DNA of 64,000 nucleotides from Zygnema circumcarinatum SAG 698-1b (taxonomy: Eukaryota; Plantae; Zygnematophyceae), in assembly GCA_037447605.1 (NCBI GenBank), contig CM074820.1, positions 434,001-498,000 on the forward strand, read 5' to 3'. A program made the translations under genes and the position numbers. Positions 30,101-59,540 of the stretch are shown piece by piece; position 1 is the first letter of the stretch; every line of letters starts with the position of its first letter. The notes beneath the pieces were generated by a model. It ran no database searches. It was not told the DNA's origin and saw only the letters and a program-made list of their open reading frames with translations.

Positions 30101-30418
30101 GAAGAGAGAGAATACCGGCGGCAGCGATCACTCCCACTTGCCTCATTCCTCCTCCGAGAGCTTTTCGGAGTCGTCTCGCCTGCAAAAAGAATAAAATGAA
30201 ATCAAAACAATAAGATAAAACGAAACAAATTAATGGGCAAAGAAAAATAAAATAAGACCCAAAACCAAGTAATAATATGCGTTCAAAAGTTGAAAAGTTC
30301 GACAAGCAACATGCTTTAACATTTGAGGCATTAAAGAGGAAGAGAAAGAGAGAGAGAGAGAGAGACAGAGAGAGAGAGAGAGGGAGATAAAAAGAAAGAG
30401 ATAGAGATAGAGAGAGAA

Positions 30419-36012: not shown

Positions 36013-36049
36013 GCCGACGAGGGGGGTATCCCCGCCCTGCCTCTCCTTC

Positions 36050-37130
36050 TCTCGCCCCTCTCTCACTTTCTCGCTCTCTCTCTCTCCCTCTCTTTCTCTC
36101 ACTATCTCTCTCCCTCTCAATCTCCCTCTCTCCGTCTCCCTCTCTCCCTCCCTCTCCCTCACACTTCTCCCTCGTCACCCCATTCACCTCTCCCTCCCTC
36201 TCTCCCGCCCCACCTCTCTCCCTCCCTTCTCACTCTCCTACCACACCTCACCTCTCTCCCTCCCTCCCCTCACCCTTTCCCTCTCAACCTCCCAACCCAC
36301 TTCACCTCCCCCTCTCACTCGTCTCTCCCTCGCTCCCTCCCTCCCTCTCTCTTCCTCTCCTCTCCCTCTCCCGCTCCCAACCCACTTCACCTCCCCCTCT
36401 CACTCGCCTCTTCCTCGCTCCCTCCCTCCCTCCCTCCCTCCCTCCCTCCCTCCCCCTCTTCCTCCCTCTCTCCCTCTCCCGCTCCCTCTCTTCCGCTCTC
36501 CCTCCCTCCCAACCTTTCCTGCGCTCAACCTCCCAAGGCCTGCCTTTCCTGCCACTGCAACTCCTCTTTAGTCCCCTCCAATTGGGACTCGCCACGTGTC
36601 ATACATGTCCGCGTGGTGCGTTCCCATTGGACGACTCCAACGTTTTAGCAGAAAGTGCCCTAGGCCGAGCTGCGTTGGCGAGCGCAGGGTCCAAGGGGGC
36701 TTACACATGCGGGGACGCCACTTGATTGGCTCAGACGGACTGTATCCTCTAACTGGGGACGCGACACGGACTCCGAGTATCCTTTCTGGTGTGAGTTGAC
36801 GTCCTTCGCGACTCTCGAGAACTGCAAAAAGGGGAGTTTGTTGGACGGGATCATGGGAGTACCATAAATTGGCGGACGCAAACGACAGAGGTAAAGTAAA
36901 TTGGGGACAAGCCGTGGACGCCAAAAGGTCGCGAAAACTCACCGCACGCACTCGTCTGAAGTTTCAAGGGCAGGAAGAAAACGACAGGACATGCACGAGA
37001 CTTCCCGGAAGCTGCCTGCCGCCTTTTGGATTTTCTGCCAGGAAGCCTCGTGCGTCGCTAACTGCCATTATGACCGTATAGTTACCGTACATGTCAACTC
37101 TTATAGCCGTACCATTCGAAGCTGGCGCTC
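36050..37130 (-). promoter_or_regulatory. Putative OBERON 5' leader and promoter with (GA/CT)n tract, G-box and CCAAT motifs
   Basis: CT tract at 36050-36530 upstream of the ATG; CACGTG at 36593-36598; ATTGG/CCAAT motifs nearby. Function is inferred from position only. Confidence 0.4.
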
Positions 37131-38363
37131 CATACAGGGGGTCCTCGTCATATTTTCCACCTTCAACAGTGCGTCACCAATAAATTCGCACCGATTTTGT
37201 CGAAACCACCATTTTGTACGGTAACTTTGTGTTAGCCGTACTATTCGTACTATCCGTACCCTAAAAACCGTCGGGCAGAGTTTTTGCGTTGCCGTAGGCA
37301 AAAGCTTTGCGGTCGTTTTGATCCGTACGATGGGTTCGATTATGTTGTCAAAGATTAATTTAGTGAATATGGGGTATAGTTGCCGCGAGTCTGACTTTGC
37401 CACGTTGCGCGTCCTTACTGGTTGTGCTTTTCGTTGGATCGAATGCGCCGAAAATGGGGTAGATCGCGTACTTATTTTGTCATTGCCACGTGTCGCTTTG
37501 TACGTACGACGGCGTGTTTTATGTGGCGTACGGATTCTGTTAGGTTGTGAAGGATGAATTTAATGAAATTGGGGTATAATTTCCGCGAGTCTGACGTTGC
37601 CACGTCGCGCGTTCTGATTGGTTGTGCGTTTCGTTGGATCGAATGCGCAGAAAATGGGGTATATCGCGTACCCATTTTGTCATTGCCACGTGTCTTTTTC
37701 TATGTACGACAGTTTTTGGTTTGAATGTTTTACGGGACGTATTGTTGTAAATAGGGTATTTGCGCAGAGTGTTTAAAGTGGCCACGTGGTGCATTCCTAT
37801 TTGTTAGCACGAACGGAATCTGTTATACTTCTTATCCAGTCAAAAATTGCCACCTTGGAAATGTAGTGTGTTTTTGAATGTCTGTTATCCAGTCAGGTGT
37901 TGCCACGTAGCCCTAAAATGGGAAAAAAACCAAAAAAAAACCACACACAAACTGCGAAAACAGAATGAAGCCTCATTCTGTTTCCGCAGTTTGTGTGTGG
38001 TTTTTTAACAAAAATAAAAAATCAATCTGAATATTACAACATGAGCTCGAACGGAATTTGTTATAATTCTTATCCAGTCAGAAATTGCCACGTTGGTACT
38101 GTTGTGTGTTTTTGGATGTCTGTTATCCAATCAGGTGTTGCCACGTAGCCCTAAAATGGGAAAAAAAGCAAAAAAAAACCACACACAAACTGCGCTGACA
38201 GAATGTGGCCACATTCTCTCTTGCAGTTTGTGTGTGGATAAAAAAAAAAACACAATCAATCCAAATATTACAACATGTGGCCTCATGTTGTATATATTAG
38301 GTTGATTTTTTGTTTTTTGTTTTTTTTGTTTGTAAAAGTCACACACAAAAATACACACACACA

Positions 38364-38394
<31 letters not shown>

Positions 38395-38579
38395 CCACAC
38401 ACACACTCACACACACACACACACACATTCACCCACACACACACACTGTCTCTCACACACACACACACACAAACACACACACTCACACGCACAAAAAATG
38501 AAAAAAACAAAAAAAATCAGAAAATGATGAAGAAAAAGATGAAGAAAATGATGAAGAAAATGTAAAGAATGCGAACATC

Positions 38580-38950
38580 ACCATATCCAGGACCGGGTCC
38601 TTCCGAAATCTTTCCAGAGTTATTTGCTATACAATACATGGGTGTGAGCGTAAGTACGGACCTTTTTTCATGAAGATCTTATGTTTCCGAAATTTTTTCG
38701 ATCTTTTCGAACATCGCTATATCCAGGACCGGGTCCTTCCGAAATCTTTCCAGGGTTATTTGCTATACAATGCAAGAGTGTGAGCGTAAGTACGAACCTT
38801 TTTTCATCATGATCTTATGTTTCCGAAATTTTCTCGATCTTTTTGAACATCGTCATCTCCAGGACCGGGTCCTTCCGAAATCTGTCCATGGTTATTTGCT
38901 ATAAAACACATAAGTCAAGCGTAAGTACGAACGTTATGTACATCATGATG
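38580..38950. repeat. 136-bp tandem repeat, about 3 copies (inverted 2-copy counterpart at about 51410-51680)
   Basis: ccaggaccgggtccttccgaaatc recurs at 38587, 38723 and 38859. Confidence 0.85.
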
Positions 38951-39372
38951 TCATTTTTATCATTTTTTTTTTTTTTTTTGGTAATTTTCAAAACTGCGAA
39001 ATGTCCAAATTTCCAGATGTCCAGGATTTTAAAATTTCCAGCTTTTCAAAATTTCCAGCGATTTCCAGCGATTTCCAGCGATTTCCAGCGATTTCTCTTT
39101 AAAGTCCAGAGGACTGTAAAATCTTTGAAGTCCAGAGGACTGACTGACTATGGACGGACAACCTAGCTGACTGACTGACTGGCCGACTGACTGACAAACA
39201 CTGACTGACTTCTGAATGACTGACTGACAGATGGACTCATGGTCTGACTGACTGACTGATTGACTGACTGACCGACTGACTGACTGACCGACTGGCTGAC
39301 TGACTTGTTAGTTTGTTGACTTTTTTGTTTGTAAAAGTCACACACGAAAATACACACACACACACACACACA

Positions 39373-39414
<42 letters not shown>

Positions 39415-42245
39415 ATCGACTGTCACAGACACTGACTGACTTCTGATTGACTGACAGACAGACGGACAGACTGACAGACTGACTGACTGACATGTTAGTT
39501 AGTAGCCTCCATCCTTCCTCAACACCCTCTTCAACTTCTTCCTTCGCCCTTCCACCATTCTCCCTCTCACCACACTCCATGTTCCTTCCTCCGCCTTCCT
39601 CCTCAACACCCTCCTTCCTCCTCCTCCTTCCTCAACACCCTCTCGTTTCTCTTCCTTCGCTCTTCCACCATTGTCCCTTTCACCACACTCCATGTTCCTT
39701 CTCCCTCCTTCCTCCTTCCTCCTCCTCCTCCACCAATCATTATTTTTCGGTTTTTCGCATTTCTCTGGTAGGAAGAAATGCAGCAAGAGCTGCAGCAGCA
39801 GAAAGGCAGAGAATTCGCAGCGACATAAGTGTTGGTTATACTGCCTTCCCTCACTCACACATGCCAACCCCCTCCCTCCTTCAACACCAAATTCAACGCA
39901 AAAACCTCCCCTTCGCCCTCAACCTCACCTCTCCGAGGACGTGGACGCAAAGAAAACCTCAGCACCCGTCACTCGTCCCTCTTCCTCCTCCTCCCCCTCC
40001 CCCTCCTCCTCCGTTGCCGCTCCCCTCTCCCGTTCCATGGCGCTGCCCCCTCCCCCTTCAAAGGCCTCCTCCCTTCCAAGTGGGCGCCATCCAAAGGGCC
40101 CTCCTCATCCTTTCACCACACTCCATGTTCCTGCTGCGACATAAGTGTTGGTTACGGTAGATTTCGGAACAAAACGGCAGCAAGCACCACCAGCAACTCT
40201 TCAGCCAGGACAAAGCAGTGTAAAGTAAATGGAAGTCCGGAGGTGGTGCGCATTAGGAAGATGATATCGCTGTTGTTCCGTAGCAGTTTCGTCATCGAAA
40301 CGTCGTCGACGTCCCCGTACAGGGACGAAACTGCTCTATTTGGCTCTATGTCGGTTCTCTTTTTTTGACGTTTTTCGTAATCGCGGGATTGTGATTGTCG
40401 GTTGACAATGCCCGGCTGCATCGCTATGGCGCCAGCTGGCTCCACGCTGGGCGGCCACGACTCCGCCGTGTCTTCTCGCAGTCGTAGTGGATGGGCTGAC
40501 GCCATCATGAATCACGCTGGCCGATCGGACGTGCAAATTCGGGCGACGGGCGCTACGCGACATAAAGCGACGCTGCTCATGCTATTAATCGCCGCATACG
40601 ACGCCGCTGCGATGCCACGCTGGGCGGGTCGGTCTTCGCCGCGCCGCTACGCGCCACAAAGGCGGAACAATAACCGAAGCAGGGCTGGCCAGCTGGCGCA
40701 GACGCCGCCGCGGGTTTTCGCTAGCCTCGGTGATGGTTCGCCACGCGGGCCGGATCACCGCTGCGGTGTCAGCGCTTAGAGGTATCTAGCGGGTTCACCG
40801 CTACCGGGCGGGTGGATTCAGTTGCACGCTGGCCAAGCAGCGACGCCGCTGGCGGTGACAATCGCGACGTGCCGTTCACGCGCGACACGTACGCGATACG
40901 ACGCAGATATGACGCCAGCGTCAATCGGGGTTGGCGGTTGATCTCAGAATCCTTTCCTTTCTTCTCACACTTTGTTTCATGACGTAATCAACGGAAGCGG
41001 GCGAAGAAGCTGCCGTACTGAGTCGCCCCATCGTCGGGCTACTCTAATCAAGTGGTGCCAGCGTGGACCACCTCATGTGCGGTCCGCTGACCTGAACGCG
41101 AACGCTGTACGGACGTAGCCGAAAATGAGTTATAATCTGACGCTGCCAAAGGATTTACAACAGGGAGGGGCAATCGGTAGCGTCAACCGCGTCAGGCCAC
41201 CGTACTGGCACGAAACGGTTGTACGGGACAATCAAGCGTGGACGCAGGACGGGTCCATTTCAGATGATTTCGCGAATCGCGTGATTGTGATCGCCGGTTG
41301 ACAATGCTTGAAACGGATGTTTGGTACCGTATGTGTTGGTAAACCGCAACAGCTTGTGTTGTCAAACTATGGACACGCAAGATTTGGAATGGTTCGCTGA
41401 TCTCTAAAATCTGGTCAATGTGTTGGTCACTAAAACCGCTCTAACGTACCGTGTCGTGTTTGACAGATACGTAACAGCTCTATTTGTAGTTTGACAAACG
41501 GTAGCCGTTGCCGAATCCATTGTTACGACAGCCTTATTTGATGTGACTTAACAAGTAGTTTTGTTCGTTGATCATTCGCGTTCAGTTCGGCTTGGACGTC
41601 GTTGGTTTCTGCTGTGCCAAGCTACGTGGAATTTTGTCACTTCATCACGGTGCAGATCTAACCTCCCTTTTTTGCGTTGCCGTAGGCAAAAGCTTAGTCA
41701 TCGTTTTGATCCGTACGACGGCTTCGATTATGTTGTCAAAGATTAATTTAATGAAAATGGGGTATAGTTGCCGCGAGTCTGACGTTGCCACGTCGCGCGT
41801 GCTGATTGGTTGTGCGTTTCGTTGGATCGAATGCGCAGAAAATGGGGTATATCGCGTTCCCATTCTGTCATTGCCACGGGTCGTTTTCTACGTACGACAG
41901 CGTTCGATTTTGATGTTTTATGTGGCGTACGGATTCGGTTAGGTTGTCGAAGATGGATTTAATGAAAATGGGGTATAGTTGCCGCGAGTCTGACGTTGCC
42001 ACGTCGCGCGTCCTGATTGGTTGTGCGTTTCGTTGGATCGAATGCGCAGAAAAAGGGGTATATCGCGCTCCCATTCTGTCATTGCCACGTGTCGTTTTCT
42101 ATGTACGACAGCGTTCGTTTTGAATGTTTTACGGGACGTATTGTTGTAAATAGGGTATGTGTCGCAGTGTGTTAAAAGTGGCCACGTGGTGCATTCTAAT
42201 TGGTTAAATCGCACCTCGCGCAACTGAACAGAACACAAAATTAAA

Positions 42246-42834
42246 CAGCTTATGTGTTCGATCAGTTTCCGTTTCAGTTCACTTCACATAATTAAGGTTC
42301 GAAGACATTTCTATAAAAAGGCAACGCACGAGGATCTTGATCCGCAGCCTGTTGTTTTACAATCCGCTCGGAGCGGAAGATCCGTCCGCCACGAGATCGG
42401 TCGCGGCTGTACGTCCTTCACACGTGTGATCAATATCAGCCGTCGATTCTTTTGTAGATCGCACCACGGCAGATCACCGTTCGATCTGCAGCCGGGCTTG
42501 GTCTCAGCGAATGGCACGCGTCCAAGGACCTTTGAGCCGGCTTGTGTGTGACACGTGGGCGCGTGCCATTCGCTGGGACCGAGCCCGGCTGCAGATCGAA
42601 CGGTGATCTGCCGTGATGCGATCTGCGAGATAATCGACGGCTGCGATTAACTGCAAGTGTGAAGGACGCACACCCGCGACCGATCTCGTGGCGGACGGAT
42701 CTTCCACAACGAGCGGATTGTAAAATAACAGGCTGCGGATCAAGATCCTCGTGCGTTGCCTTTTTATAGAAATGTCTTCGAACCTTAATTATGTGAAGTG
42801 AACTAAAACGGAATCTGATCGAACACATAAGCTG
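42246..42834. repeat. 589-bp core hairpin (279-bp arms, 31-bp spacer)
   Basis: cagcttatgtgttcgatc... pairs with ...gatcgaacacataagctg; the arms are highly similar throughout. Confidence 0.92.
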
Positions 42835-44071
42835 AATGGGTACGCGATATACCCCATTTTCTGCGCATTCAATTCAATGAAACGTACAACCAATCAGGTC
42901 GCGCGACGTGGCAACGTCAGACTTGCGGCAACTATACCCCATTTTCTTTAAATTCATCTTTGACAACCTAATCGAATCCGTAGGTCACATAAAACATTCA
43001 AATCGAACGCTGTCGTACGTAGAAAACGACACTTGGCAATGACTAAATGGTTACGCGATATACCCCATTTTCTGCGCATTCGATCCAACGAAAAGCACAA
43101 CAAATCCGGACGCGCGACGTTGCAACGTCAGACTCGTGGCAACTATACCCCATTTTCATTAAATTCTTTTTTTAGCCTGGTATGTTGGAGCTGTGATTAA
43201 TTTGACCAACACCATAACCGTTTCGGGCGTTGTCAACCGAACCATTCCAAATCTTGCGTGTCCCGTGTTTGACAAAACAAGCTGTTACGGTTTACCAACC
43301 CACCCCGGTACAAACATGCCGTTTCGGGCATTTTCAACCGACAATCACAATCCCCCGATTACGAAAACCGTACTAAAAAGGGCCACATCCTCGTCCAAAA
43401 GCCGATTGTCCGAATAGAGCCGTTTCGTGCCGGTACGGTGACGTCGACGACGTTCCGACGTTGACGTTCGACGACCGACCTACAGATGACTGCCGTACAG
43501 ATTCTCTGCCCGTCAGGTCCCCTTCGCCATTTTCCGGCTGCTACATGAGTGGTCCACGTGGCGCCACTTGATTCGTAGCCGACATTCTGAAGCGACTCCA
43601 CTGACGCTTCGTTCCGCCGCTTCGTGCACCACCGTTGATCTCCATCCGTCGCGCCACATGTCGCGCGCTCCACGCTCCGCACTCGCGCCGCAACAAATCA
43701 GCGCTCTGCTGGCCGTACACCAGCGCGCCGCTCCGTACAACTACATTTCTGCCCAATCTTCATGCGCGCGCTACAGTACGCGCAAACCCCCGAAGACTTG
43801 TACGGTCGCTAAGGCGGTCCTCCATGCAATATGGACGCTATAAGCACACCACTTAGAACTCAGCCGGGCGCCATCCGCGCGTCGCATCTGCGCGTCGTAT
43901 GCGCGTGTCGCATGAACGACGTCGCCGGTGTCGCACGGCGCGTCGCCGGCACGTGGCGAACCGCCACGGGCTAGCAAGAGCCACGCGGCGTCGCGCCACT
44001 GGCCAGCCCTGCTTCCAGTCCCTCACGATACGATGTTATTATGTTATGATGTTATCAACTATGTTGTTATA

Positions 44072-45037
44072 TGTTAGTGTTAGTGTGCTATAGTTAGACA
44101 TTGTACGGGTTCACACTAACATTGTTGTGGTCCTCAGTTGGGAAACATGAGATCTGCTAGTAGTGTTCCTAGGAAATACGGTCGGGCCAAATGTCGGTGG
44201 CCCGTACGCTTTTCGGGCGCGGAGGATGTCGGTGATGTCGGCGGAACCGCGTCAGACCCTTAGTGCGGTCCGCGGACTGTGACGAGGTCAACTACGGAGG
44301 AGACCGAGTCAGCAGCCACGCGGACAAGTGTGAACGGCGCGGAAATGCGACGACGGAGATTTCGTCGCGGACGGCGCGAATGTGTACGGTGCGCGCGAAA
44401 CGAACATGCGCGCGCGGGCGGCGGACGCGTACGGACGGGCGGCGGAAGTTCTGCGCTCGAACGGACGACAAGTTCAGATGGGCGGCGGAACTGTACGGAC
44501 GACCTGACTAGGTCGGTGCTGGCGTAGGTTTGCGAAAGACCGCAAAGCTGGATGTTGAACGCGTACCTGGCTGCTGAACGCATGAGGGCGGCCGTGACGT
44601 GACATCGGTCAACAAGGAAGATGTCACGTAACACGGCCATGGCGGTATATAGGGTTTAGCTTTGTTATGAAGGATAACCACATTAGACTACTGTAGTCCC
44701 GTGACTTATTCTGTGCCTGCTCGTGTTGCTGGGCTGCCCTGCTTGTGTCGCAAGGTAGTGAGTAAGGGGAGAAGTAGCTAGTGAGAGGGGGAGAACTTCA
44801 TGTGGGTGACATTCTTATTATAAAGGAGTTTTAGAGCCGTGAGCTTTCTCCTATACTCTCTCGTGTGTGATTTCCGCTGTGCTCGTCTCTGCGTTCATTC
44901 TGTGAGTTATGGGCTATGAGTGAAGTGAGATAGAGTGAGAGAGAGTGAAGATGTCTTCATCGGTGGGAACCGGAGTTCCAATGGAGGGCGACACGCGAGG
45001 TGGCGCCGGGAGCAGCGAGCAGATCCAGACTCCAACA
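44072..45037 (+). repeat. 5' LTR of copia element
   Basis: Direct repeat of 49452-50417; TATA-like tattataaa near 44816. Confidence 0.95.
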
Positions 45038-48000
45038 AGTGGTATCAGAGCCAATGGTGGCGACGAGGACCACGTGAAGTTCAGCATTCCCGCATTCGAC
45101 GGTCAAGACTACAAGGGGTGGAGATGGCGGCTGGTTCCTTTGCTCGTGGGCAAGGGACTGTTGGGGTACGTCAACGGCACCATCAAGGCACCGGTGCTAC
45201 CGGAGGGAGCCACGGCGGAGCAGCAGTCGGAACACGAAGTGGCGCTCGCCAGATGGAGTGCCAAGGACAACAAAGCGCTCACCCAGATCGTCATGAGTGT
45301 GAGGGGAAGTCCTTCGTCCATGCTGTATGATCTCAAGACCTCACATGCTATGTGGAGGTGCTTAGAAGAGATGTATGATGTAAAGGATAACGTCACGATA
45401 GTGAGTCTTTACACGCAGCTTGGGAAGATGAAGATGACTTCGGATGAGAAACTGAGTGAATATATGGTCAGGTTTGATACCTTGATGGAGAGGTTCATAG
45501 CTCTACAGAAACCGTTAGAGAGTGACCATAAGATCAGCCAGTTCTTAGGGGGATTGACCTCTAGATTTGATGTAGCAGTCGCAGCGCTTAGGACTGTCCT
45601 AACGAACTCGAAAATGACCCTTGAGCAAGTGAAGCGGAGGATCAAGGAGGAGGACACCGTCCAAGACACCGGGAGCACCGAGGAGAAGGTGCTAGCGCTG
45701 CACTCACGACAAGACCGAAGAGGAGGTGCGCCGAAGTCGGACCGAGGAGAACGCCCTGCGGGAGCGTGCTACACGTGTGGCAAGACTGGCCACTACTCGG
45801 CAGACTGCTACAAGAACAAGAGTCCCCAAGATCGGGGAGGAGGAGGCGCGCCGGCATTCGGCAAGAAGGAGAAGAAAGGCTTCAAGGGGATCTGCTTCAA
45901 GTGCAAGAAGCGAGGTCACAAGAGCACCGAATGCAGAGGGTCGAATGAGACCAATCTGATGATGGCTGAAAGGCCCGAAGGTTCTGACTTTGTTGGGAAG
46001 ATCCAGGTTCAGGATCTGAAGCGGCCCTGGTTGATCGACTCAGGCGCTTCCACACACATGTGTGGCGACAAGCAGATGTTCTCCACGTTGGACACGCTGG
46101 AGAAGACTCGATCTGTTCACTCGGCAACCGGAGAGGGAGTGACAGTCACGAAGGGTGGAGTAGTCAAGATGATTCTCGGAGACGGCTCTGTCATCTACGA
46201 AGAGGAGAGGGAGGAGCGTTTGTGTATCGGTGATGTACTCCACACCCCCGAGCTGAAACAGAACTTCATGTCTGTTAGCCAGGTGTGTAAGAGGGGGTAC
46301 GAGATCACGTTCAAGGAGAAGTCTTGCGTAGCTACTCACGCAGTGACGGGGAAGCGGCTGTTTGAGGGGTATGAGAAGGGAGGCCTGTATTATCTTCATT
46401 ATAGAAGGACAGAGGATGAAGATGTGATGGCTGTGGCTGAAACTGCCATAAATCTCTGGCATCGTAGACTTGGACATCTTAACCATCGGGGGTTGCAACA
46501 GCTTGCTGCTAAGGGGCTGGTCCGTGGGTTAGACGTAGATGTCGTGGAGAAGGAGCTCGGCTTTTGCAAGGAGTGTGTAGAGGGGAAGGCGCATCGGAAA
46601 CCATTCGCGAGGAGCGGAGAGGAGGCGTACCATGCGCAGGAGAAACTGGAGTTGGTTCACACCGACCTTTGTGGCCCCGTGACACCGGCAACGAGTGGAG
46701 GAGCTCGGTACTTCATCACTTTTCTCGATGATTTTTCGAGGAAAATTTGGGTGAAAATTCTCAAGAACAAGTCTGAGGCTTTCGGAGCCTTCAGAGATTG
46801 GCAGACTCAGATGGAGCGAGAGAGCGGACAGAAACTGAAGACTCTGCGCTCAGACAACGGAGGGGAGTTCAAGTCGAAGGAGTTCGGCGAGTACCTCAAG
46901 ACTCGTGGAATTAGGCATGAATTCTCTGCTCCCTACTCCCCTCAAAGTAATGGAGCTGCTGAAAGGGTAAATAGGACGTTGGGGGACATGGCGCGGACCA
47001 TGCTCATAGATTCCCCCTTCCCGGCTTCTTTCTGGGGAGAGGCGGTGATGACCGCAGCTTACCTTAGGAATAGATGCCCATCTTCTGTGCTCAAGGACCA
47101 GGTTCCTGAGGAGGTGTGGAGTGGGAGAAAGCCCACGGTTTCCCACCTGAAGGCTTTCGGAGCGCGCTGCTGGTCGACAGTGCCGAAGGCGAGACAGAAG
47201 AGGAAGTTTGACCCGCGAGCCGTTGAAGGATATGTTCTCGGCTACAACATGGACAGTCGCACCTACAGGATTTGGAACCCGCGAGCGAAGGAAGTGCAGA
47301 GCTCGAGGGACATCACGGTGGACGAGAAAGGGGCGGTGACACGGCTAGGTGAGACCCAGCCCCAAAAGGCAGGATTGGAGATTGTGTATGAGGACGTGGA
47401 AACCAGCGGAGAAGGCGCTGAAGCCTCCCTTGTGTCCTGGTTTTGGAGGAGATCACGACGCCGGAAGAGCGCCGCATCGAGCAACACCGAATCGTCGAGA
47501 AGCGAGGTAAGGCGGAGTCGAACCCGGTACCGCGGCCGGGAGCCGAGAATGTATCGAGACGGCTCTTACTACACACTCACCGGCTGGGATGAGAAGACCG
47601 GCCTAAACCGCATCTTTGGCATCGGACAGAGTCCGGAGGACTCGAGATGGCCGAGAGAGACGCGATGAGGGCAAGGATGCCTCCGGGATTTGTTCCCGGA
47701 ATTTTCTTCAACTCGAGGAGTGGGAGAACGCAAGGACCGCGGAGGAGCACCCGTGTGGTGAGGAGGCCTGAACGATACAGGCCGTCGCAGACTAACCTGA
47801 TGCAGGAGAGAGTGCCTACGGACTCTGCTGACCTCGCAGGAGTTGCCCACTGCTACATGATCACTGAGCCGCAAACCTTCGAGGAGGCTCACGATGGGGT
47901 CGATGGAGCGAAGTGGCGAGCAGCGATCGATAGCGAGTGGAATAGTCTGATAGAGAACGGGACGTGGCGACTGGAGAAGCTGCCGAAGGGAAGGAGAGCC

Positions 48001-49435
48001 ATTGGATGCAAGTGGGTGTTCAAGGTGAAGCGAAAGGCGGACGGGAGTGTCGACCGTTACAAGGCGCGGCTGGTGGCGAAGGGCTACAGCCAGAAGTACG
48101 GAATCGACTACACGGAGACTTTCGCCCCGGTGGTGAAGTTTAACTCCCTCCGTGCCCTAATCTCGATCGCAGCTGCTGAGGGGATGCATGTCCATCAGTT
48201 AGATATCAAGACCGCGTTTCTGTACGGAGATCTCGCTGAGGAGATCTACATGGAGCAGCCCGAAGGGAAAGTTGTCCCGGGGCAGGAGCATCTCGTCTGT
48301 CGCCTAGTGAAGAGTCTGTACGGACTGAAGCAGGCACCCAGGATCTGGTACGAGAAGATTGACGATCTTCTGAGGAGCAACGGATTTGCGCGCTTTGAGA
48401 CGGATCATTCCGTCTACCGACAAGGAGAGGAGGGAGATCTCATATACGTTGGGATCTACGTGGATGACCTCATTATGGTGAGTCTCTCACGGAGAGAATC
48501 AATGATCTGAAGAAGCTTTTGCAAGCTAACTTCCAAATGTCGGATCTAGGGGAGGCGCAGTATCTCCTGGGGATACAGCTGAAGAGGGGGCAGGACGGAA
48601 GTCTGTTCCTAAGTCAGAAGAAGTACGCCGCGGATGTACTAGCGAGATTCAATATGGAGGAGTGCAGACCGTGCACCAGTCCGATGGAGATCGGCGCGAG
48701 ATTGTCGAAAGATATGGAGCCCGCGACGGACGCGGAGGTACAGCGCATGTACGGAGTGCCGTACAGATCTGCTATCGGAAGTTTAATGTACCTAATGATT
48801 GGTAACCGAATCGACTCTGGCTTAAGGTCGCGAGCCGCCGGCAAGTCGGTTCATGGAGCAATCCCGCCCCTCGCCATCAGAGGCGTCGCAAAGCCAATCT
48901 TTCGTTCAGACACGGGGACCCTTCTGGAGTACGGACTTCGCTATTTAGAGAGGGTCATCAGAAGTGGATCGGATACACCGACTCTGACTGGGGAGGTGAC
49001 GTGGACACATCGCGATCGACCTCCGGATTTGTTTACCTGAACGCAGGTGGAGCGATCTCATGGAGCTCGAAGCTACAGGATTCGGTTGCGTTGTCTAGCA
49101 CCGAAGGCGAGTACATGGGAGCATGTCACGCAGCGAAGGAGGGAGTTTGGTTCCAACATTTCTTTGATGAGTGTAAGAGGCCACAACGTCCCTTGACTTT
49201 GTTCACGGATAATCAGTCGTCCATAGCTCTTGTTGAAAACCCTGTGTTTCATAAGAGGACAAAGCACATTAGAGTACAATACCATTATGTGCGAGAATTA
49301 GTAGAGGAGGGGATGATTGTTGTGAAGTTCGTGGGGACGAAGGAGCAGGCTGCGGATATGTTGACTAAAGGAGTTAGTGGTGAGACGCTACTAGTGAATA
49401 GCAGACTCATTGGGCTAGGGCCCATGAGGAACTGA
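44951..49435 (+). pseudogene. Copia gag-pol polyprotein, frameshifted in its 3' half
   Basis: FDGQDYKGW (gag); CYTCGKTGHYSADC and CFKCKKRGHKSTEC knuckles; WLIDSGASTHMC (PR); LWHRRLGH, HTDLCGP, LRSDNGGEF (INT); KARLVAKGYSQKYGIDY, QLDIKTAFL, YVDDL (RT); SRSTSG..WSSKLQ..ALSSTEGEY, ADMLTK (RH). Split across ORFs 44945-47668, 47647-48510, 48519-49040, 49001-49435. Confidence 0.93.
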
Positions 49436-49451
49436 GGCCCAAGAGGGGGAT

Positions 49452-50417
49452 TGTTAGTGTTAGTGTGCTATAGTTAGACATTGTACGGGTTCACACTAAC
49501 ATTGTTGTGGTCCTCAGTTGGGAAACATGAGATCTGCTAGTAGTGTTCCTAGGAAATACGGTCGGGCCAAATGTCGGTGGCCCGTACGCTTTTCGGGCGC
49601 GGAGGATGTCGGTGATGTCGGCGGAACCGCGTCAGACCCTTAGTGCGGTCCGCGGACTGTGACGAGGTCAACTACGGAGGAGACCGAGTCAGCAGCCACG
49701 CGGACAAGTGTGAACGGCGCGGAAATGCGACGACGGAGATTTCGTCGCGGACGGCGCGAATGTGTACGGTGCGCGCGAAACGAACATGCGCGCGCGGGCG
49801 GCGGACGCGTACGGACGGGCGGCGGAAGTTCTGCGCTCGAACGGACGACAAGTTCAGATGGGCGGCGGAACTGTACGGACGACCTGACTAGGTCGGTGCT
49901 GGCGTAGGTTTACGAAAGACCGCAAAGCTGGATGTTGAACGCGTACCTGGCTGCTGAACGCATGAGGGCGGCCGTGACGTGACATCGGTCAACAAGGAAG
50001 ATGTCACGTAACACGGCCATGGCGGTATATAGGGTTTAGCTTTGTTATGAAGGATACCCACATTAGCCTACTGTAGTCCCGTGACTTATTCTGTGCCTGC
50101 TCGTGTTGCTGGGCTGCCCTGCTTGTGTCGCAAGGTAGTGAGTAAGGGGAGAAGTAGCTAGTGAGAGGGGGAGAACTTCATGTGGGTGACATTCTTATTA
50201 TAAAGGAGTTTTAGAGCCGTGAGCTTTCTCCTATACTCTCTCGTGTGTGATTTCCGCTGTGCTCGTCTCTGCGTTCATTCTGTGAGTTATGGGCTATGAG
50301 TGAAGTGAGATAGAGTGAGAGAGAGTGAAGATGTCTTCATCGGTGGGAACCGGAGTTCCAATGGAGGGCGACACGCGAGGTGGCGCCGGGAGCAGCGAGC
50401 AGATCCATGCTCCAACA
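49452..50417 (+). repeat. 3' LTR of copia element
   Basis: Follows the PPT, ends tccaaca and is followed by the TSD ttata. Confidence 0.95.
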
Positions 50418-51759
50418 TTATATGCCTGTTGCTTACGCTATAAGCAAACGAACAAACATGCAAACACGGTACAAACATGCCGTTTCGGGCATTGTCAACC
50501 GACAATCACAATCCCGCAATTACGAACATCGTACAAAAAAGGACCACATCCAGGGCTCCATAGCCTGTTGCCGGTTTTGTGCCGGTACCTGCGGACGCCG
50601 GCGACAAAGCCATGACGGTTATCTATAAACATCGTGAATATTTCATCTTCCCCGTTTTACGCCCTCCTATTGATCCATTTTCTTTACACTTCCAATAAGA
50701 GTTGTTGCTGGCCGACATTCGAGGATCCTCCGGATCACGAGGATGGAACATGGAGTGGAGTGAAGGGAAGAATGGTGGAAAAATGAAGGAAGAAAAGGAT
50801 GAAGAAGAAACATCGAGAATGGAAAGAGCAGAATGGTGGAGGGGGGAAGGAAAAAAAGGAAGGGAAGTAACATGGAGTGTGATGAAGGGGAGAATGGTGG
50901 AAGGAAGAAGGAAGAAAAAGGAGGAAGGAATTAGATTGTAGTGAAAAGGAAAATGGTGGAAGGGAGAAGGAAGAAACAGGGGGAGACAGGAACATGGAGT
51001 GTGGTGAAGGGGAGAATGATGGAAGTGAGAAGGAAGAAAAAGGGGGAGGAAGGAAAATGGAGTGTGTAAAGGGAAGAATGGTGGAAGGGAGAAGGAAGAA
51101 AGAGGAGAGGTTGTTAATGAAAGATGAAGGCTACTAACTAACAAGTCAGCCCGTCAGTCTGTCAGTTTGTCGGCCAGTCTGTGAGTCCGTCTGTCAGTCT
51201 GTCGGCCAGTCTGTGAGTCTGTCTTTCTGTCAATCTGTCTGTCAGTCTGTCGGTCAGTCTGTGAGTCCGTCCGTCAATCACTTTGTCAGTCTGTCGGCCA
51301 GTCCACCAGTCCTCTGGACTTTAAAGACTGGTCATATGGAAATTTTGGAAATTATGGAAATTCTGGAAATTTTGGAAATTATGGAAATTATGGAAATAAG
51401 GTTCGTTCTTACGCTTACTTTCAAGTATTGCATAGCAAATAACCCTGGATTGATTTCAGAAGGACCCGGTCCTGGAGATAATGATGTTCGGAAAGATCGA
51501 AAAACGTCAGTGATATATGATTATAATAAAAAAAGGTTCATATGTACGCTATCACTCATGTGTAGTATAGCAAATAACCCTGGATTGATTTCAGAAGGAC
51601 CCGGTCCTGGAGATAATGATGTTCGGAAAGATCGAAAAACGTCAAAATATATGATCCTAATCAAAAAAGGTTCGTACTTCACATTCCCATTCTTCACATT
51701 TTCTTCTTCACCTTTTTTTTTCTTTTCTTTTTCTTCCTTTCTTGTTGTTTTTTTTTTTC

Positions 51760-51772
51760 TGTATGTGAATGT

Positions 51773-51811
<39 letters not shown>

Positions 51812-54120
51812 TTTGTGTGTATGTATTTGCGTGTGTGACTTTTACAAACAAAAAAAAAAAAAAAAATCAAACTAATTAATACAACATAAGGCCTCATGTT
51901 GTTATATTTAGATTGATTATGTTTTTTTTTTTTTAACTGTAAAGACAGAATGAGGCCTCATTCTGTCGTCGCAGTTTGTGTGTGGTTTTTTTTTGGTTTG
52001 TTGTAATATTTAAATTGTTTTTTTTCCCTGTGACTGTGTTTGTGTGTGTGTTAATTTGTTTTGTGTTTTTTTAAACAAAAAAAAAAAAAAAAAGAACACT
52101 CTCAATATTACAACATCAGGCCAAATGTTGTAATATTAAGATTGTTTTTTTCTTTTTTTTTTCCCTGTGACTTTTTTTCTTTTTTCTTTGTTTTTGTTTG
52201 TGTGTTTTTGTGTGTGTGTCTTTGTGTGTATGTATTTGCGTGTGTGACTTTTACAAACAAAAAAAAAAGACATCTCAATATTACAACATCAGGCCAAATG
52301 TTGTAATATTAAGATTGTTTTTTTTCCCTGTGACTGTGTTTGTGTGTGTGTGTATTTGCGTGTGTGACTTTTACAAAAAAAAAAAAAAAAAAAGAATACT
52401 CTCAATATTACAACATCAGGCCAAATGTTATAATATTAAGATTGTTTTTTTTTTTTTTTTTCCTTCTGTGACTGTGTTTGTGTGTGTGTGTGTATTTGCG
52501 TGTGTGACTTTTACAAACAAAAAAAAAAAAAAAAAAAAATCAAACTAATTAATACAACATGAGGCCTCATGTTGTAATATTTAGATTGATTATGTTTTTT
52601 TTTTTTCTTTTTCTGTGAGTGTGAATGTGTGTGGGTGTGTGTGTGTTGTGTGTATTTGCGTGTGTGACTTTTACAAAAAAAAAAAAAAAAAAAAAAAAAT
52701 CAAACTAATTAATACAACATGAGGCTTCATGTTGTAATATTTAGATTGTTTTTTTCTTTTTTTTTTCCTTGTGACTGTGTTTGTGTGTGTTTGTGTATTT
52801 GCGTGTGTGACTTTTACAAACAAAAAAAAAAAAAAAAGAACACTCTCAATATTACAACATCAGGCCAAATGTTGTAATATTAAGATTGTTTTTTTCTTTT
52901 TTTTTTCCCTGTGACTGTGTTTGTGTGTGTGTGTATTTGCGTGTGTGACTTTTACAAACAAAAAAAAAAAAAAAAAAAAAATCAAACTAATTAATACAAC
53001 ATGAGGCCTCATGTTGTAATATTTAGATTGATTATGTTTTTTTTTTTTTTTTTTTCCCTGTGACTGTGTTTGTGTGTGTGTGTATTTGCGTGTGTGACTT
53101 TTACAAACAAAAAAAAAAAAAAAAAAAAATCAAACTAATTAATACAACATGAGGCTTCATGTTGTAATATTTAGATTGTTTTTTTCTTTTTTTTTTCCTT
53201 GTTACTGTGTTTGTGTGTGTTTGTGTATTTGCGTGTGTGACTTTTACAAAAAAAAAAAAAAAAAAGAATACTCTCAATATTACAACATCAGGCCAAATGT
53301 TATAATATTAAGATTGTTTTTTTTTTTTTTTTCCCTGTGACTGTGTTTGTGTGTGTGTGTATTTGCGTGTGTGACTTTTACAAACAAAAAAAAAAAAAAA
53401 AACACTCTCAATATTACAACATCAGGCCAAATGTTGTAATATTTAGATTGTTTTTTTCTTTTTTTTTTCCTTGTTACTGTGTTTGTGTATGTGTGTGTAT
53501 TTGCGTGTGTGACTTTTACAAACAAAAAAAAAAAAAAAAAAAATCAAACTAATTAATACAACATGAGGCCTCATGTTGTAATATTTAGATTGATTATGTT
53601 TTTTTTTTTTTTGATTTTTTTTAAACAAACAAAAAAAAAAAAGAACACTCTCAATATTACAACATCAGGCCAAATGTTATAATATTAAGATTGTTTTTTT
53701 TTTTTTTTTTCCCTGTGACTGTGTTTGTGTGTGTGTGTATTTGCGTGTGTGACTTTTACAAAAAAAAAAAAAAAAAAAGAACACTCTCATATTACAACAT
53801 CAGGCCAAATGTTGTAATATTAAGATTGTTTTTTTTTTTTTTCCCTGTGACTATGTTTGTGTGTGTGTGTATTTGCGTGTGTGAATTTTACAAAAAAAAA
53901 AAAAAAAAAAAAACACTCTCAATATTACAACATCAGGCCAAATGTTGTAATATTAAGATTGTTTTTTTTTTTTTTTTTTTTTGTGTGACTGTGTTTGTGT
54001 GTGTGTGTGTATTTGCGTGTGTGACTTTTACAAAAAAAAAAAAAAAAAAAAAAAAAATCAAACTAATTAATACAACATGAGGCTTCATGTTGTAATATTT
54101 AGATTGATTATGTTTTTTTT
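51760..54120. repeat. Tandem array of about 16 hairpin-forming units (mean period about 146 bp)
   Basis: Unit: (GT)-rich segment, gacttttaca, A-tract, then palindrome aatattacaacat-caggccaa-atgttgtaatatt or tacaacatgaggcctcatgttgta, then T-tract. Confidence 0.9.
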
Positions 54121-55339
54121 TGGTTTTTTTCCCATTTTAGGGCTACGTGGCAACACCTGACTGGATAAGCATTTGATCCGACGAAACGCACAACCAATCA
54201 GGACGCGCGACGTGGCAACGTCAGACTCGCGGCAACTATACCCCATTTTCATTAAATTCAACATTCACAAACTAACCGAATCCGTACACCACATAAAACA
54301 TCAAAATCGAACGCCGTCGTACATAGAAAACGACACGTGGCAATGCCAGAATAAGTACGCAATATACCCCATTTTCTGCGCATTCGATCCAATGAAACGC
54401 ACAACCAATCAGGACGCGCGACGTGGCAACGTCAGACTCGCGGCAACTATACCCCATTTTCATTAAATTCATCATTCACAAACTAACCGAATCCGTACAC
54501 CACATAAAACATCAAAATCAAACGCCGTCGTACATAGAAAACGACACGTGGCAATGCCAGAATAAGTACGCAACATACCCCATTTTCTGCGCATTCGATC
54601 CAATGAAACGCACAACCAATCAGGACGCGCGACGTGGCAACGTCAGACTCGCGGCAACTATACCCCATTTTCATTAAATTAATCTTTCACAACATAATCG
54701 AACCCGTCGTACGGATCAAAACGATGGCAAAGCTTTTGCCTACGGCAACGCAAAAATTCTGCCCGACGGAAAACGGGTGTGTGCCGATTCCAAAAAAAGT
54801 GTGAAAGGAGCATTTTCTGCTGTTAATCCTTTTTTTACTATTGTAAAATCTGCCCAGCGAAAAAAGGTCTGTGTGTAGACAAAAAAGGTGTGAGAATAGA
54901 ATTTTCCACCCTAAAACCCTAAAACCCTTAAAACCCGTACTATCCGTACTAGCCGTACTAGCCGTACTAGCTATACTAGCCGTTACGGGCTTACGCAAAA
55001 CTCACCTAATCTCCCCGCACGTGGCGCCGTAAGAGGCGCTCGCTCTTCTCCCCTTCGTCTTGACTTCGATACGATACGATACGATACGACATGCCCAGAT
55101 ACGGTACTATCCGTACGAGCTATTGTAGCCGATATGGTACGATTCGGTACGATATTACAACAAACGACACGATACGATACGTACGGACCTACATGAACAC
55201 TAACATAATTCCGCTCGCCTATTGGTAACACGGACCTTCTATTTGCCAAAAACAATATTTTCGCCCGGTATTTGCCGAAACCAGGTGGAAAATATGACGA
55301 GGACCCCCTGTATGCAGTAGTCCCCCCAAATTACTTTCG

Positions 55340-56021
55340 GGAAACGACTATTTACAGTGACCTTGTTCTGAATGTAGTGTACTTTTTCGTCGGGCAGCTT
55401 GTACAAAGGATTTTTTTTGCGAAAAATGCTGTTTCATACTTTTCAGAATAGATACAGACCTTTTTTTGTCGGATGTACGGATGGTGATTTGAACGAAGCG
55501 CCCGCGTGTACGAGGTAAAAGGGCGCAACACGATGATTGGTCGCGGCAACATATGACGTGACAAGTATGTTTGGGACCGTGACGTGACGAAACGAGACGC
55601 GAAAAAAGTGGAATCCGCGGACGGCAGTCGGAAATGGCGGGAATTAAAACTGACAGAAAATGGTCAGTCAGTAAAGTAAGTCAGTGGTGCATTGGTGGTA
55701 AAGTCTGTCAGTTTTAATTCCCGCCATTTCCGACTGCCGTCCGCGGACTCCACTTTTTTCGCGTCTCGTTTCATCACGTCACGGTCCCAAACATACTTGT
55801 CACGTCATATGTTGCCGCGACCAATCATCGTGTTGCGCCCTTATACCTCGTAGACGCGCGCGCTTCGTTCAAATCACCATCCGTACATCCGACGAAAAAA
55901 GGTCTGTATCTATTCTGAAAAGTATGAAACAGCATTTTTCGCAAAAAAAATCCTTTGTACAAGCTGCCCAATGAAAAAGTACACTACATTCAGAACAAGG
56001 ACACTGTAAATAGTCGTTTCC
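55340..56021. mobile_element. 682-bp hairpin MITE-like element with 8-bp TSD
   Basis: Arms 55340-55657 and 55704-56021 are near-perfect reverse complements; flanked by TACTTTCG at 55332-55339 and 56022-56029. Confidence 0.8.
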
Positions 56022-56371
56022 TACTTTCGCCCCTTATATTTTCGCTACCCAATATTTTCGGAAAATGATACAGGCGCCCCACTTTTTGGATATCAGCGCC
56101 CCCTTTCGGGAAAAAACTGTACTTTCATTTTGGCTAATCACGGCCCCCCCTTGGATCTTTCGGGAGGAGAGATCTTGATCGACAATCGGACCCCGCGCCT
56201 CGCGCGCAGGATCCGACCGTGCACCGACGTACGGCGCCGCGCATCGCGGCGCGGCCCGCGAGATGCGGTGAGCCTACGGAAACGTTGTCCTCACCTGACC
56301 CTTTTGGGTCAGAGGTTGCTACGTGGCAGTCTACCATTGGACAGCCCTGCTGCCGATCCCCCATGCCGATA

Positions 56372-57740
56372 CAGTGGACCCCCATAATATTTTCCACCTT
56401 GTACAGTGCGTCCCCAAGAAATTCGCCCCGATTTTGCCGAAACCACCTTTTTGTACGGTAACTCAATGTAAACGTAGGGTAGTGATATTTCCACCCCTTT
56501 TTTGGATCCAAACACCCCTTCCCGGCCGGGCAGATTTCAAAAGGGATTAAAAACGGAAAATGATTTTTTCACACCTTTTTGGAATCGATACCCACCTTCT
56601 TCAGTCGGCTGATTTTATTTTTGCTAACCAACGAAAATGATAACCCGTCACTGCATTTTGAATACTGTATCCCGCCTCCCTGAATTTTTTTTTGAGGGAA
56701 AGAAATATCTGCCTGCCCGAATCCGCTCGAAGCGGAAGATCCGTCCGCCACGAGATCGCTCGCGGGTCCTTCACACGTGCGTGTCAATCGCATCTGTCGA
56801 TTCCCTCGCAGATCGCACCACTGCAGATCACCGTTCGATCTGCAGCCGGGCTCGATCTCAGCGAATGGAAAGCGCCCACGAGTCCCGTCAAAGCCGGATC
56901 GCACGTACGAGTGCGCGCGTCCCTCGGCCCGAGATCTCGTCACTGTTAGTTCTCAGCCAATGAAAATCTGCCACGTGTTATATTTTTGACGTGGAAAATT
57001 TTGATTGGTCCAAGCTCTCAATGTACGAAATTCTGGGTTCCTCAAGTTGTGACCTTACGAAATTTGTACGAACAAACTTTTGAGACGAGTTTGGCGGGAT
57101 ACGTGGGCACGGGCCATTCGCTGTGACCGAGCCCGGCTGCAGATCGAATAGTGATCTGCCGTGTTGCGATCTGCGAGGGAATCGACGGCTGCGATGACCG
57201 CACGCGTGAAAAAAAATCAGGTAGGCGGGCTATTCAAAATGGGGTGACGGGTTATCATTTTCCTTGTTTCGCAAAAATAAAATCTGCCGATGGAGGGTGA
57301 GTATCGATTCCAAAAAGGTGTGAAAAAAGCATTTTCCGTTTTTAATCCTTTTTGAAATCTGCCCGGCCGGGAAGGGGTGTTTGGATCCAAAAAAGGGGTG
57401 GAAATATCACTACCCGTTAACGTATTAGGGGTGTTAACCTAACCTGACCTATTCTCCAATACAAAATCTGTTAATCGAAACGGATTTCAAACATGGGTCA
57501 CGCTTTTACGCTGTACGTTAAGTACGAATAGAATCTCTAAATCATACGGTATATGTACGGCACCAATAGGAGCTCGTGTATCTAAAGCACGGTACGATAC
57601 GATACGATACGTACGGACAGACATGAACTCTAACATAATACCGCTCGCCTATTGGTAACACGGACCTTATATTTGCAAATTACAATATTTTCGCCCAGTA
57701 TTTGCCGAAACCATGTCGAAAATATTATGGGGGTCCACTG
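56372..57740. mobile_element. pogo/Tigger-like MITE interrupted by a foldback element
   Basis: TA|CAGTGGACCCCCATAATATTTTC... and ...GAAAATATTATGGGGGTCCACTG|TA; internal modules match the 58282-58877 MITE. Confidence 0.7.
56477..57415. mobile_element. Mutator-like (GGG...CCC) foldback element, about 940 bp
   Basis: TIRs over 200 bp starting GGGTAGTGATATTTCCACCCC; flanks GTAAACGTA (56468-56476) and GTTAACGTA (57416-57424) give a 9-bp TSD with one mismatch; inner arms homologous to the 42246-42834 core. Confidence 0.75.
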
Positions 57741-58281
57741 TATCAGCATGGGGGACCGGCAGCAGGGCTGTCCAATGGTAGACTGCCACGTAGCAACCTC
57801 TGACCCAAACGGGTCAGGTGAGGACAACGTTTCCGTAGGCTCGCCGCATCTCGCGGGCCGCGCCGCGATGCGCGGCGCCGTACGTCGGTGCACGGTCGGA
57901 TCCTGCGCGCGAGGCGCGGGGTCCGATTGTCGATCAAGATCTCTGCTCCCGAAAGATCCAAGGGGGGGCCGTGATTAGCCAAAATGAAAGTACAGTTTTT
58001 TCCCGAAAGGGGGCGCGGATATCCAAAAAGTGGGGCGCCTGTATCATTTTCCGAAAATATTGGGTAGCGAAAATACAAAGGGCGAAAGTAGGAAACGACT
58101 ATTTACAGTGTCCTTGTTCTGAATGTAGTGTACTTTTTCGCTGGGCAGCTTGTTGGGCGAATTTCTTGGGGAACGCAAGAGGGTGGAAAATATGAGGGGG
58201 GGGCTACTGTAGTGGTACTAGCCATACTAGCCGTACTAGCCGTACTATTCGTACTATCCGTACTACCTGTACTAGCCGTTA

Positions 58282-58877
58282 CAGTAGGACCCCGTCATAT
58301 TTTCCACCATCAAAAGTGCGTCCCCAAGAAATTCGCCCCGATTTTGCCGAAACCACCTTTTTGTACGGTTACTTGTGTTAGCCGTACTATTCGTACTAAC
58401 CGTACTAGCCGTACTAATTGTACTAACCGTACTTCCCGTACTAGCTGTACTAGCCGTCACGGGCTTACGCAAAACTCACCTATTCTCCCCGCACGTGCCG
58501 CCGTAAGAGGCGCTCGCTCTTCTCCACTTCTTCTTGGTTTCGATACGATACGATACACCCCGATACGGTACTATCCGTACTAGCCGTACGAGCTGTAGTA
58601 GCCGTTACGGGCTCGAAGCTTTTTGGTTTGCTGCCTCAGTAAACGCTAAGGCGTGCTTCATGTACTGTATGCTGTTAGCCACGATACGATACGGTACGAT
58701 GCGGTGCGATACGACAGCAAACGATACGATATGGTGAGATACGATACGTACGGACCTACATGAACTCTAACATAATTCCGCTCACCTATTGGTAACACGG
58801 ACCTTATATTTGCCAAATACAATATTTTCGCCCGATTTTTGCCAAATGTAGGTGGAAAATATGACGGGGTCCTACTG
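58282..58877. mobile_element. 596-bp pogo/Tigger-like MITE (uninterrupted family member)
   Basis: Perfect 27-bp TIR CAGTAGGACCCCGTCATATTTTCCACC with TA on both flanks; internal (ccgtacta)n and (gatac)n subrepeats. Confidence 0.85.
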
Positions 58878-59540
58878 TACGGTCTTAAGCAAAACTCACC
58901 GAATCTTCCCACGTGCCACGGTACGAGGCGCTCACTTTTACGATATGATACGATACGGTATGATTTGTACGGACAAACAGTAACTCTAACATAATACGGC
59001 CCGCCACTTGTTAAAATGGACACCCTTACATTTTCGCTACCCAATATTTGCCGAATCATATCGAAAATATTGGGGGGGGGGCCTACTGTGGGTACCACCT
59101 CATGATGGTACAGTTTTTTTGTCGTATGTGACAGGGACTGAGACTTAGTTTTTAATACCGAAAAATGAACTTCCTTAAAAAGAAGTGCAGAAAAGTGCTC
59201 AACAAAACTCTCATCACTTCACGGAGCAAGCTCCCTCCCTGCCCTGCAAACCCTAAAAACAAAAGCAGGGAAATGGAAAGAAACGTCAACAGCAGGGAGG
59301 GCCCTCACACTCATCCCGAATTGCACCCCTCAGAAAGAGAAGAATCTAAGGAAAAGAGCAAGCAAAGCAAAGCAAAGCAAGCAACCCCTCTGCGAGATAA
59401 TTCATTCCATGGCTTTAAGAAGAAGGAGGAGCTTCACAAAGACCTAAACTCCTGAAAGAGAGCTTCTCAAACTCCCTCCTGCTTGAAGGAGCTTCCTGCC
59501 TACTGGGCAAAACTTTGAGAGGGAAAACTTCCGAGCCCCT

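Follow-up and report, generated by a model that had tools for sequence, protein, structure and literature searches.

Genomic Context

The DNA considered here is a stretch of 64,000 nucleotides from the zygnematophycean alga Zygnema circumcarinatum SAG 698-1b (GenBank assembly GCA_037447605.1, contig CM074820.1, positions 434,001 to 498,000 of the forward strand; hereafter the window, whose own numbering is used throughout), and the element in question is a giant imperfect palindrome enclosed in an 18-kb block of repetitive DNA. This block occupies much of an intergenic region full of transposons (36-59.5 kb) that separates the OBERON gene from a ribophorin II-like gene. OBERON is encoded on the minus strand (33654-36162), where one exon encodes the PHD_Oberon domain (34672-36162) and another the Oberon_cc domain (33654-34238); its 5′ end faces the block, which starts ~0.5-1 kb upstream of the gene and thus lies where a preliminary description of this DNA had placed it. 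The ribophorin II-like gene ends (3′) at ~59.7 kb, on the opposite side of the intergenic region.

Taken as a whole, and with a single origin of the palindrome included, the block is fairly probably a stack of three ordinary mobile elements, in which a miniature inverted-repeat transposable element (MITE) carries a giant, old and truncated foldback element that itself carries a young copia retrotransposon. The first layer would be a non-autonomous, Tc1/pogo-like MITE of ~600 bp with a TA duplication and 28-bp terminal inverted repeats (TIRs); the second would be a single old DNA transposon of the foldback type, very large (~11.3 kb) and without coding sequence, that had entered the (CCGTACTAG)n tract of the MITE; and the third would be a young Ty1/copia retrotransposon inserted into the right arm of the foldback. 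The order of nesting, the homology to small mobile foldbacks, the construction of the arms from subrepeats and the failure to detect a protein domain are demonstrated. The structure is a large representative of an element type already known, and nothing in it points to a new system.

Nesting Order of the Block

The outermost layer is delimited by the 28-bp TIRs that had initially been taken for the ends of the palindrome. The repeat, CAGGGGGTCCTCGTCATATTTTCCACCT, occurs exactly twice in the window, at 37135 (+) and 55310 (-), with 0 mismatches where 0 occurrences are expected, and TA flanks both outer ends (37133-37134 and 55311-55312). The presence and the perfection of these repeats stand, but they belong to a MITE of ~600 bp rather than to the foldback. 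About 125 bp of the left end and ~375 bp of the right end recur twice farther downstream, and the three resulting copies (37135-55310, 56371-57743 and 58282-58879, referred to as copies 1 to 3) have both ends and the TA flanks in common within different flanking DNA. In alignment, copy 3 runs unbroken through the (CCGTACTAG)n tract at which copy 1 splits (37259 / 54935); the 17.7-kb block from 37260 to 54934 is therefore an insertion into a small MITE. The TA duplication, the short CAG-initial TIRs and the occurrence of several copies with unrelated flanks are all those of a MITE, presumably one of the Tc1/mariner-pogo pattern, to which TA-targeting MITEs with CAG-initial TIRs are assigned; no transposase is linked to it. 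This likeness covers the host layer, a non-coding element of ~600 bp with at least three copies in the window, and does not extend to the palindrome.

A fourth copy of the MITE is reduced to a 58-bp end fragment (58158-58215), which stands in reverse orientation and abuts a (GTACTAGCC)n tract followed by copy 3 (58158-58282). The interval 55313-58215 was also considered as one long-TIR MITE and rejected as such, its outer ends being only ~78% alike versus 97% for the inner arms.

The innermost and youngest layer is the copia insertion, estimated at ~6.35 kb in the preliminary description and found here to be a Ty1/copia element of 6,346 bp (44072-50417). Its long terminal repeats (LTRs; 44072-45037 and 49452-50417) measure 966 bp each, are 99.5% identical and have TG..CA ends; they are bordered by a 5-bp TTATA duplication, and the Pfam domains of the element (gag, beta-barrel protease, integrase and RVT_2, the reverse transcriptase) follow one another in the order that characterizes the Ty1/copia class. 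Directly after the 5′ LTR lies a putative primer-binding site, TGGTATCAGAGC, which we take to match the initiator tRNA-Met. The gag-pol frame (44945-49435) is split into at least four open reading frames (ORFs), with breaks near 47.65, 48.51 and 49.0 kb, despite the 99.5% identity of the LTRs.

Mirror Order and Anatomy of the Arms

Once the retrotransposon is excised, 14 inverted segments form a colinear chain in strict mirror order, from 37268/54769 inwards to 42076/42834, around a core hairpin; the concentric arrangement about a center near 42540 that had been proposed for this locus is thus borne out. Mirror order was checked in four ways, by inverted-repeat search, self-BLAST, the colinear chain after excision of the retrotransposon and an ASCII dot-plot, and the self dot-plot, suggested in the preliminary description, displays a continuous anti-diagonal with the modules in mirrored order. 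An inverted partner in the opposite arm exists for 66% of the left arm (37260-42540) and for 82% of the right arm (42541-54912, with the retrotransposon left out); in direct orientation, the coverage is 5% and 25%, respectively, and shuffled controls (n=20) give 0 nt of mirrored coverage.

The core hairpin has the 279-nt arms first attributed to it (42246-42524 / 42556-42834); they are 92% complementary and enclose a 31-nt loop centered on 42540. As single-stranded DNA, the 589-nt core folds with -323.8 kcal/mol (z = -43). A near-perfect hairpin fold is a property of these 589 nt only; the long arms differ by ~10% or more. To call the structure “almost wholly palindromic” is an overstatement: little mirroring is seen at 39.7-41.2 kb and at 43.5-44.07 kb, and a satellite is present in ~16 copies on the right versus 1-2 on the left. 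A global arm-versus-arm alignment with MAFFT was misled by the expansion of this satellite; the arm comparisons given here rest instead on the BLAST chain and on per-module alignments.

Each arm is ~5.3-6.0 kb long and built of tandem subrepeats of 211, 238/140, 136 and 113-122 bp (Table 1). From the outside inwards, the order is a 211-bp A array, a 57-bp CCAAT/ACGT/CCCTAAAA module, a ~140-bp hairpin unit, (CA)n, 136-bp repeats, ATTTCCAG-type repeats, (CTGA)n, C-rich 113-122-bp repeats and three short unique modules, followed innermost by a second A array and then by the two core halves, U and S. Every middle module of the left arm has a mirrored partner at 53047-50742, and the 57-bp module at 37885-37941 is identical to 54168-54112 at 57 of 57 positions. 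The four A arrays have the same u1/u2 unit order and near-equal mutual distances (88-93%).

The A unit is rich in CpG (observed/expected 1.86) and harbors a CCAAT-N9-CGACG box. The wider pattern CCAAT-N9-CSACG has 18 matches in the window versus 0.25 expected, half of them (9) within the giant palindrome; a convergent pair of CCAAT-N9-CCACG boxes is located at the OBERON promoter (36578-36630), just upstream of the first exon, and a convergent CCAAT-N9 pair marks the exact center of a small foldback nearby (56957-57008). A signature of CpG decay was sought in the A units and proved weak, with 16/123 changes at CpG. Beside the CCAAT/ACGT boxes at 37910 and 38150 stands the word CCCTAAAA, the same word as in the (TAAAACCC) run at the right junction with the host MITE; the left junction (37258-37267) has a single CCCTAAAAA, compared with the (TAAAACCC) run on the right.

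Table 1. Features of the nested block and of its neighbors, in window coordinates; mirrored identity counts substitutions between a module and its partner in the opposite arm.
Feature	Coordinates	Strand	Mirrored identity	Description
Left TA duplication (37133-37134) and left host-MITE part	37133..37259	+		TIR 37135-37162; 89% identical to 58280-58405
Outer-left A array	37268..37806	+	90.5%	Leader, two 211-bp units, 66-bp tail; CCAAT-N9-CGACG box in each unit; mirror partner 54769-54294
238-bp unit x2	37806..38277	+		Each with 57-bp CCAAT/ACGT/CCCTAAAA module and small hairpin
Left-arm middle modules	38240..39738	+		One hairpin-satellite unit, (CA)n, 136-bp x2.8, ATTTCCAG repeats, (CTGA)n, C-rich 113-bp x1.9
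GC-rich, poorly mirrored left stretch	39739..41197	+		Mirrored islands only at 40359-40414 and 40676-40745; ORFs without Pfam domain
Module M6			91.1%	
Module M7			92.2%	
Module M8	41198..41396	+	86.1%	Mirrored at 43440-43238
Inner-left A array	41669..42206	+	91.3%	Leader-u1-u2-tail layout, as in the outer-left array
Core hairpin	42246..42834	.		279-nt arms (U and S segments), 31-nt loop; S homologous to foldback core 56720-57210
U segment of the core			97.4%	
S segment of the core			87.8%	
Inner-right A array	42834..43172	-		1.6 units, truncated
Ty1/copia LTR retrotransposon	44067..50422, duplications included	+		TTATA at 44067-44071 and 50418-50422
Right-arm middle modules	50742..51760	-		Mirror 38455-39738: G-rich 122-bp x3, (GTCAGTCT)n, TATGGAAAT x7, 135-bp x2
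Hairpin-containing ~140-bp satellite	51780..54130	-		~16 copies (2.35 kb) in the right arm versus 1-2 in the left
Outer-right A array	54169..54769	-		2.6-2.8 units of 211 bp, partly homogenized to 96%
T arm, right terminus of foldback	54775..54912	-		Homologous to termini of foldbacks 55340 and 56478; left counterpart missing
Telomere-like (TAAAACCC) run	54913..54945	+		3-4 units between foldback terminus and host MITE
Right host-MITE part	54935..55312	+		TIR 55283-55310, TA duplication 55311-55312
Small foldback	55340..56021	.		318-nt arms (97% alike) around a 46-nt loop; 8-bp duplication TACTTTCG without mismatch; complete, young
MITE copy 2	56371..57743	+		Carries 0.94-kb foldback 56478-57418
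MITE copy 3	58282..58879	+		Uninterrupted, ~600 bp, non-coding, perfect 27-28-bp TIRs, TA flanks; “empty” reference

Membership in a Local Group of Foldbacks

The colinear mirror chain, the dot-plot and the long inverted arms, whose tandem subrepeats follow one another in a common order on both sides, support the initial view of a very large, mirror-ordered structure of the foldback type. The termini and the core connect it to its neighbors. At the right terminus, the T arm (54775-54912) can be aligned to either end of each of the small foldbacks 55340-56021 and 56478-57418, and the innermost S segment (42361-42719) is 84-85% identical to the core (56720-57210) of the second of these; the giant thus consists of the outermost and innermost parts of a ~0.9-kb foldback with ~5 kb more per arm. 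As judged from these sequence matches of T arm and core to two small neighbors, the palindrome is a member of the same local group as these 0.7-0.9-kb foldbacks. The second small foldback lies inside MITE copy 2 and has an 8/9 target duplication (GTAAACGTA / GTTAACGTA). Because of the 8-9-bp duplications, the small relatives are probably Mutator-like, by analogy with other foldbacks for which duplications of this length have been argued to indicate such an affiliation (PMC3169594, PMC4079207). The duplications of Mutator-like elements measure 8-11 bp, typically 9 bp. The first small foldback appears to be inserted into a degenerate sequence that resembles a MITE TIR (55313-55339).

Of the two termini common to these relatives, the giant retains the right one only. 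Its left terminal arm is absent, the leader of the A array starting within ~10 bp of host MITE sequence, and this truncated copy is for that reason probably immobile on its own; the only way left for it to move would be as a passenger of the host MITE, which has retained its TIRs intact.

Coding Capacity and Search for Other Copies

The giant was initially reported to lack a transposase, and this is confirmed insofar as none of the 28 ORFs tested outside the retrotransposon contains a Pfam domain. Likewise, a search for hidden cargo found no tRNA genes and no Rfam families in the giant outside the retrotransposon, and protein searches with the translated core ORF (42436-42828, minus strand) and A-array ORF (41568-41942) found no homologues. 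Elsewhere in the window, ten long ORFs (189-964 aa) are devoid of a transposase domain and none of them qualifies as a MURA-type partner. Two long ORFs without a Pfam domain encode 964 aa (18519-21413, minus strand) and 456 aa (28824-30194, plus strand). Exact-pattern scans of metagenome contigs with a conserved A-unit motif and with a degenerate MITE TIR returned 0 hits each.

Origin of the Arms and Alternative Explanations

In the mirrored non-tandem modules, substitution-only identity ranges from 86 to 97% and is mostly 90-92% (Table 1; heterogeneity p = 0.05), and in the tandem satellite, the one unit with a mirrored partner reaches 91.3%. Judged from these sequence comparisons, the arms look broadly of one age, with a divergence of ~9-10%, that is, ~18 times the divergence of the copia LTRs (0.5%). 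This near-uniform identity favors two arms with one common origin over a stack of independently aged insertions. The two ~5.3-6.0-kb arms would accordingly share a single origin, would have been lengthened by tandem amplification of subrepeats, unequally between the arms, and the giant would have been mobilized in trans by the transposase of another locus. The arms of foldbacks are known to lengthen via amplified subterminal repeats, which strengthens the binding of transposase (PMC5499845), and such amplified repeats can seed satellite arrays (PMC4079207); the unequal satellite, with its ~16 versus 1-2 copies, fits this mode of growth.

Several observations weigh against this account. The other tandem modules are only 81-82% alike, a low value that probably results from mispaired repeat units. 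In the small relative, nothing separates the T arm from the S core; the extra 5 kb per arm of the giant requires a symmetric growth, with one arm copied into the other, that is left unexplained. Each arm contains the A array twice, and the inner A-core-A block is bordered by a gap without mirrored partner (41397-41668 / 43173-43237); this duplication and this gap would be explained just as well by a second foldback that had inserted on the axis. A block, CGTACTATCCGTAC, is found on both sides of the giant, but inside a 9-bp microsatellite: with the left terminus missing and the insertion placed in such a repeat, the giant’s own target duplication is unreadable. The Mutator assignment derives solely from the length of the duplications, which only the small relatives display. 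Finally, a single giant copy is visible within the window, compared with two small relatives; one copy does not show mobility as a unit, and the “family” of the preliminary description remains unproven.

A first alternative is a nest of the Russian-doll type, in which two or more independent palindromic elements were each inserted into the axis of another; the module pairs would then be the arms of different elements, as for an inner foldback A-U-S-S′-U′-A′ (41669-43172) set in the loop of an outer A-X...X′-A′. Mirror order follows automatically from such nesting, the two A arrays of each arm have the same internal layout, and the non-mirrored segments that flank the inner block resemble loop remnants. 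Nesting of this kind is moreover seen in the window, where two of the MITE copies contain foldbacks and the axis of a palindrome with 412-bp arms is occupied precisely by MITE copy 2. However, neither convincing T-type termini nor a target duplication were found around the inner block, and the near-uniform identity across layers contrasts with the arm identities of 97%, 90% and 85% of independent elements in the window. The giant and its small relative both have S at the innermost and T at the outermost position, an arrangement that speaks for T and S as parts of one element. A Russian-doll nest is, on balance, unlikely.

Symmetric growth would be accounted for if a small foldback had enlarged in situ within the MITE, DNA entering one arm being copied into the other by arm-to-arm gene conversion, by hairpin-primed fold-back repair or by replication of a hairpin-capped break left by excision of the Mutator-like element (MULE) type; the giant would then never have transposed at its present size. 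The 5 kb added symmetrically between T and S, and a near-uniform arm identity left by one last homogenizing event, are what such growth would yield, and the excision of MULEs does leave hairpins on flanking DNA (PMC5499845). A young precedent adjoins the block, namely the spacer-less palindrome around MITE copy 2, whose 412-bp arms (55959-56370 / 58153-57744) are 97% alike and hold the last 63 bp of the 55340 foldback together with its TACTTTCG duplication; insertion-derived DNA was therefore mirrored around MITE copy 2, and these arms are a segmental inverted duplication or the result of arm-to-arm conversion, not a transposon arm. By analogy, the same mirroring process may have built the giant. 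Yet the giant bears no direct trace of a copying event, and the 57/57 identical patch is within chance at ~90% identity over ~2.5 kb. Growth in situ, which overlaps with the preferred account in everything except the place of growth, is improbable. An artefact of assembly, with inverted arms created by chimeric fold-back reads or a mis-join, is very improbable: palindromes are a known class of artefacts and the window comes from a gapped draft with eleven N runs, but every one of these lies before 33.3 kb and none in 36-59.5 kb. Artefactual foldbacks are near-identical, whereas these arms differ by 8-19%, by indels and by unequal satellite copy numbers, and the retrotransposon, with its clean 5-bp TTATA duplication, interrupts one arm only. 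A single old foldback, nested in a MITE and interrupted by a young copia element, thus remains the preferred explanation.

Comparison with Known Systems

Foldback (FB-type) transposons, which include Drosophila FB and likewise Arabidopsis FARE, resemble the giant in their long inverted arms of ordered tandem subrepeats without coding capacity. The cases compared here are Tetris of D. virilis (PMC4079207), Tm1 of root-knot nematodes (PMC3169594) and the type-2 foldback MULE Muta1 (PMC5499845). The ~211-bp unit of the giant is comparable to the ~220-bp TIR-220 of Tetris (PMC4079207), one subrepeat of the giant has been amplified into a satellite-like array as in other FB-type elements, and the small relatives carry the 8-9-bp target duplications of this group. 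By contrast, the arms of the giant are unusually long (~5.3-6.0 kb, with at least 14 module types), one subrepeat array is present twice per arm and one terminus is lost; the subrepeats are CpG-rich, with CCAAT-N9-CGACG boxes like those of host promoters, no transposase partner is known for it, and its assignment to a superfamily is not established.

The block can also be compared with the nested transposon stacks of plant intergenic regions, in which younger elements lie in older ones with clean duplications, as does here the copia element in the foldback in the MITE. In contrast to such stacks, targeting at this locus appears to be reciprocal (2-3 cases), the foldback having entered the GTAC repeat tract of a MITE and a MITE the axis of a palindrome. 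The MITEs of the host family also seem to insert into each other’s GTAC-repeat tracts.

Implications

The annotation of the 18-kb block upstream of OBERON is corrected by this analysis, as it assigns the TIRs, the palindrome and the retrotransposon to three distinct elements that differ in age. An unusually long-armed example is added to the foldback transposons of an alga related to land plants, a group whose transposons have been little described. The locus, together with the young mirrored duplication that adjoins it, is a concrete place to ask how long palindromes form and are tolerated, and it raises the question as to whether foldback arms spread promoter-type CCAAT/ACGT modules. The cruciforms and long dsRNA envisaged in the preliminary description are conjectural, and it is likewise conjectural that cruciforms, hairpin RNA or the promoter boxes might act on OBERON. 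It is conceivable, if rather unlikely, that the foldbacks of this alga extend themselves, DNA that enters one arm being copied to the opposite one through conversion between arms or repair templated by a hairpin, for which the hairpins formed on flanking DNA in MULE-type excision might be the seed. If this were true, small foldbacks would grow into multi-kilobase concentric palindromes and the 11-kb element would be a fossil of such growth, its arms being arrays of CpG-rich, promoter-like CCAAT-N9-CGACG units that adjoin the OBERON promoter.

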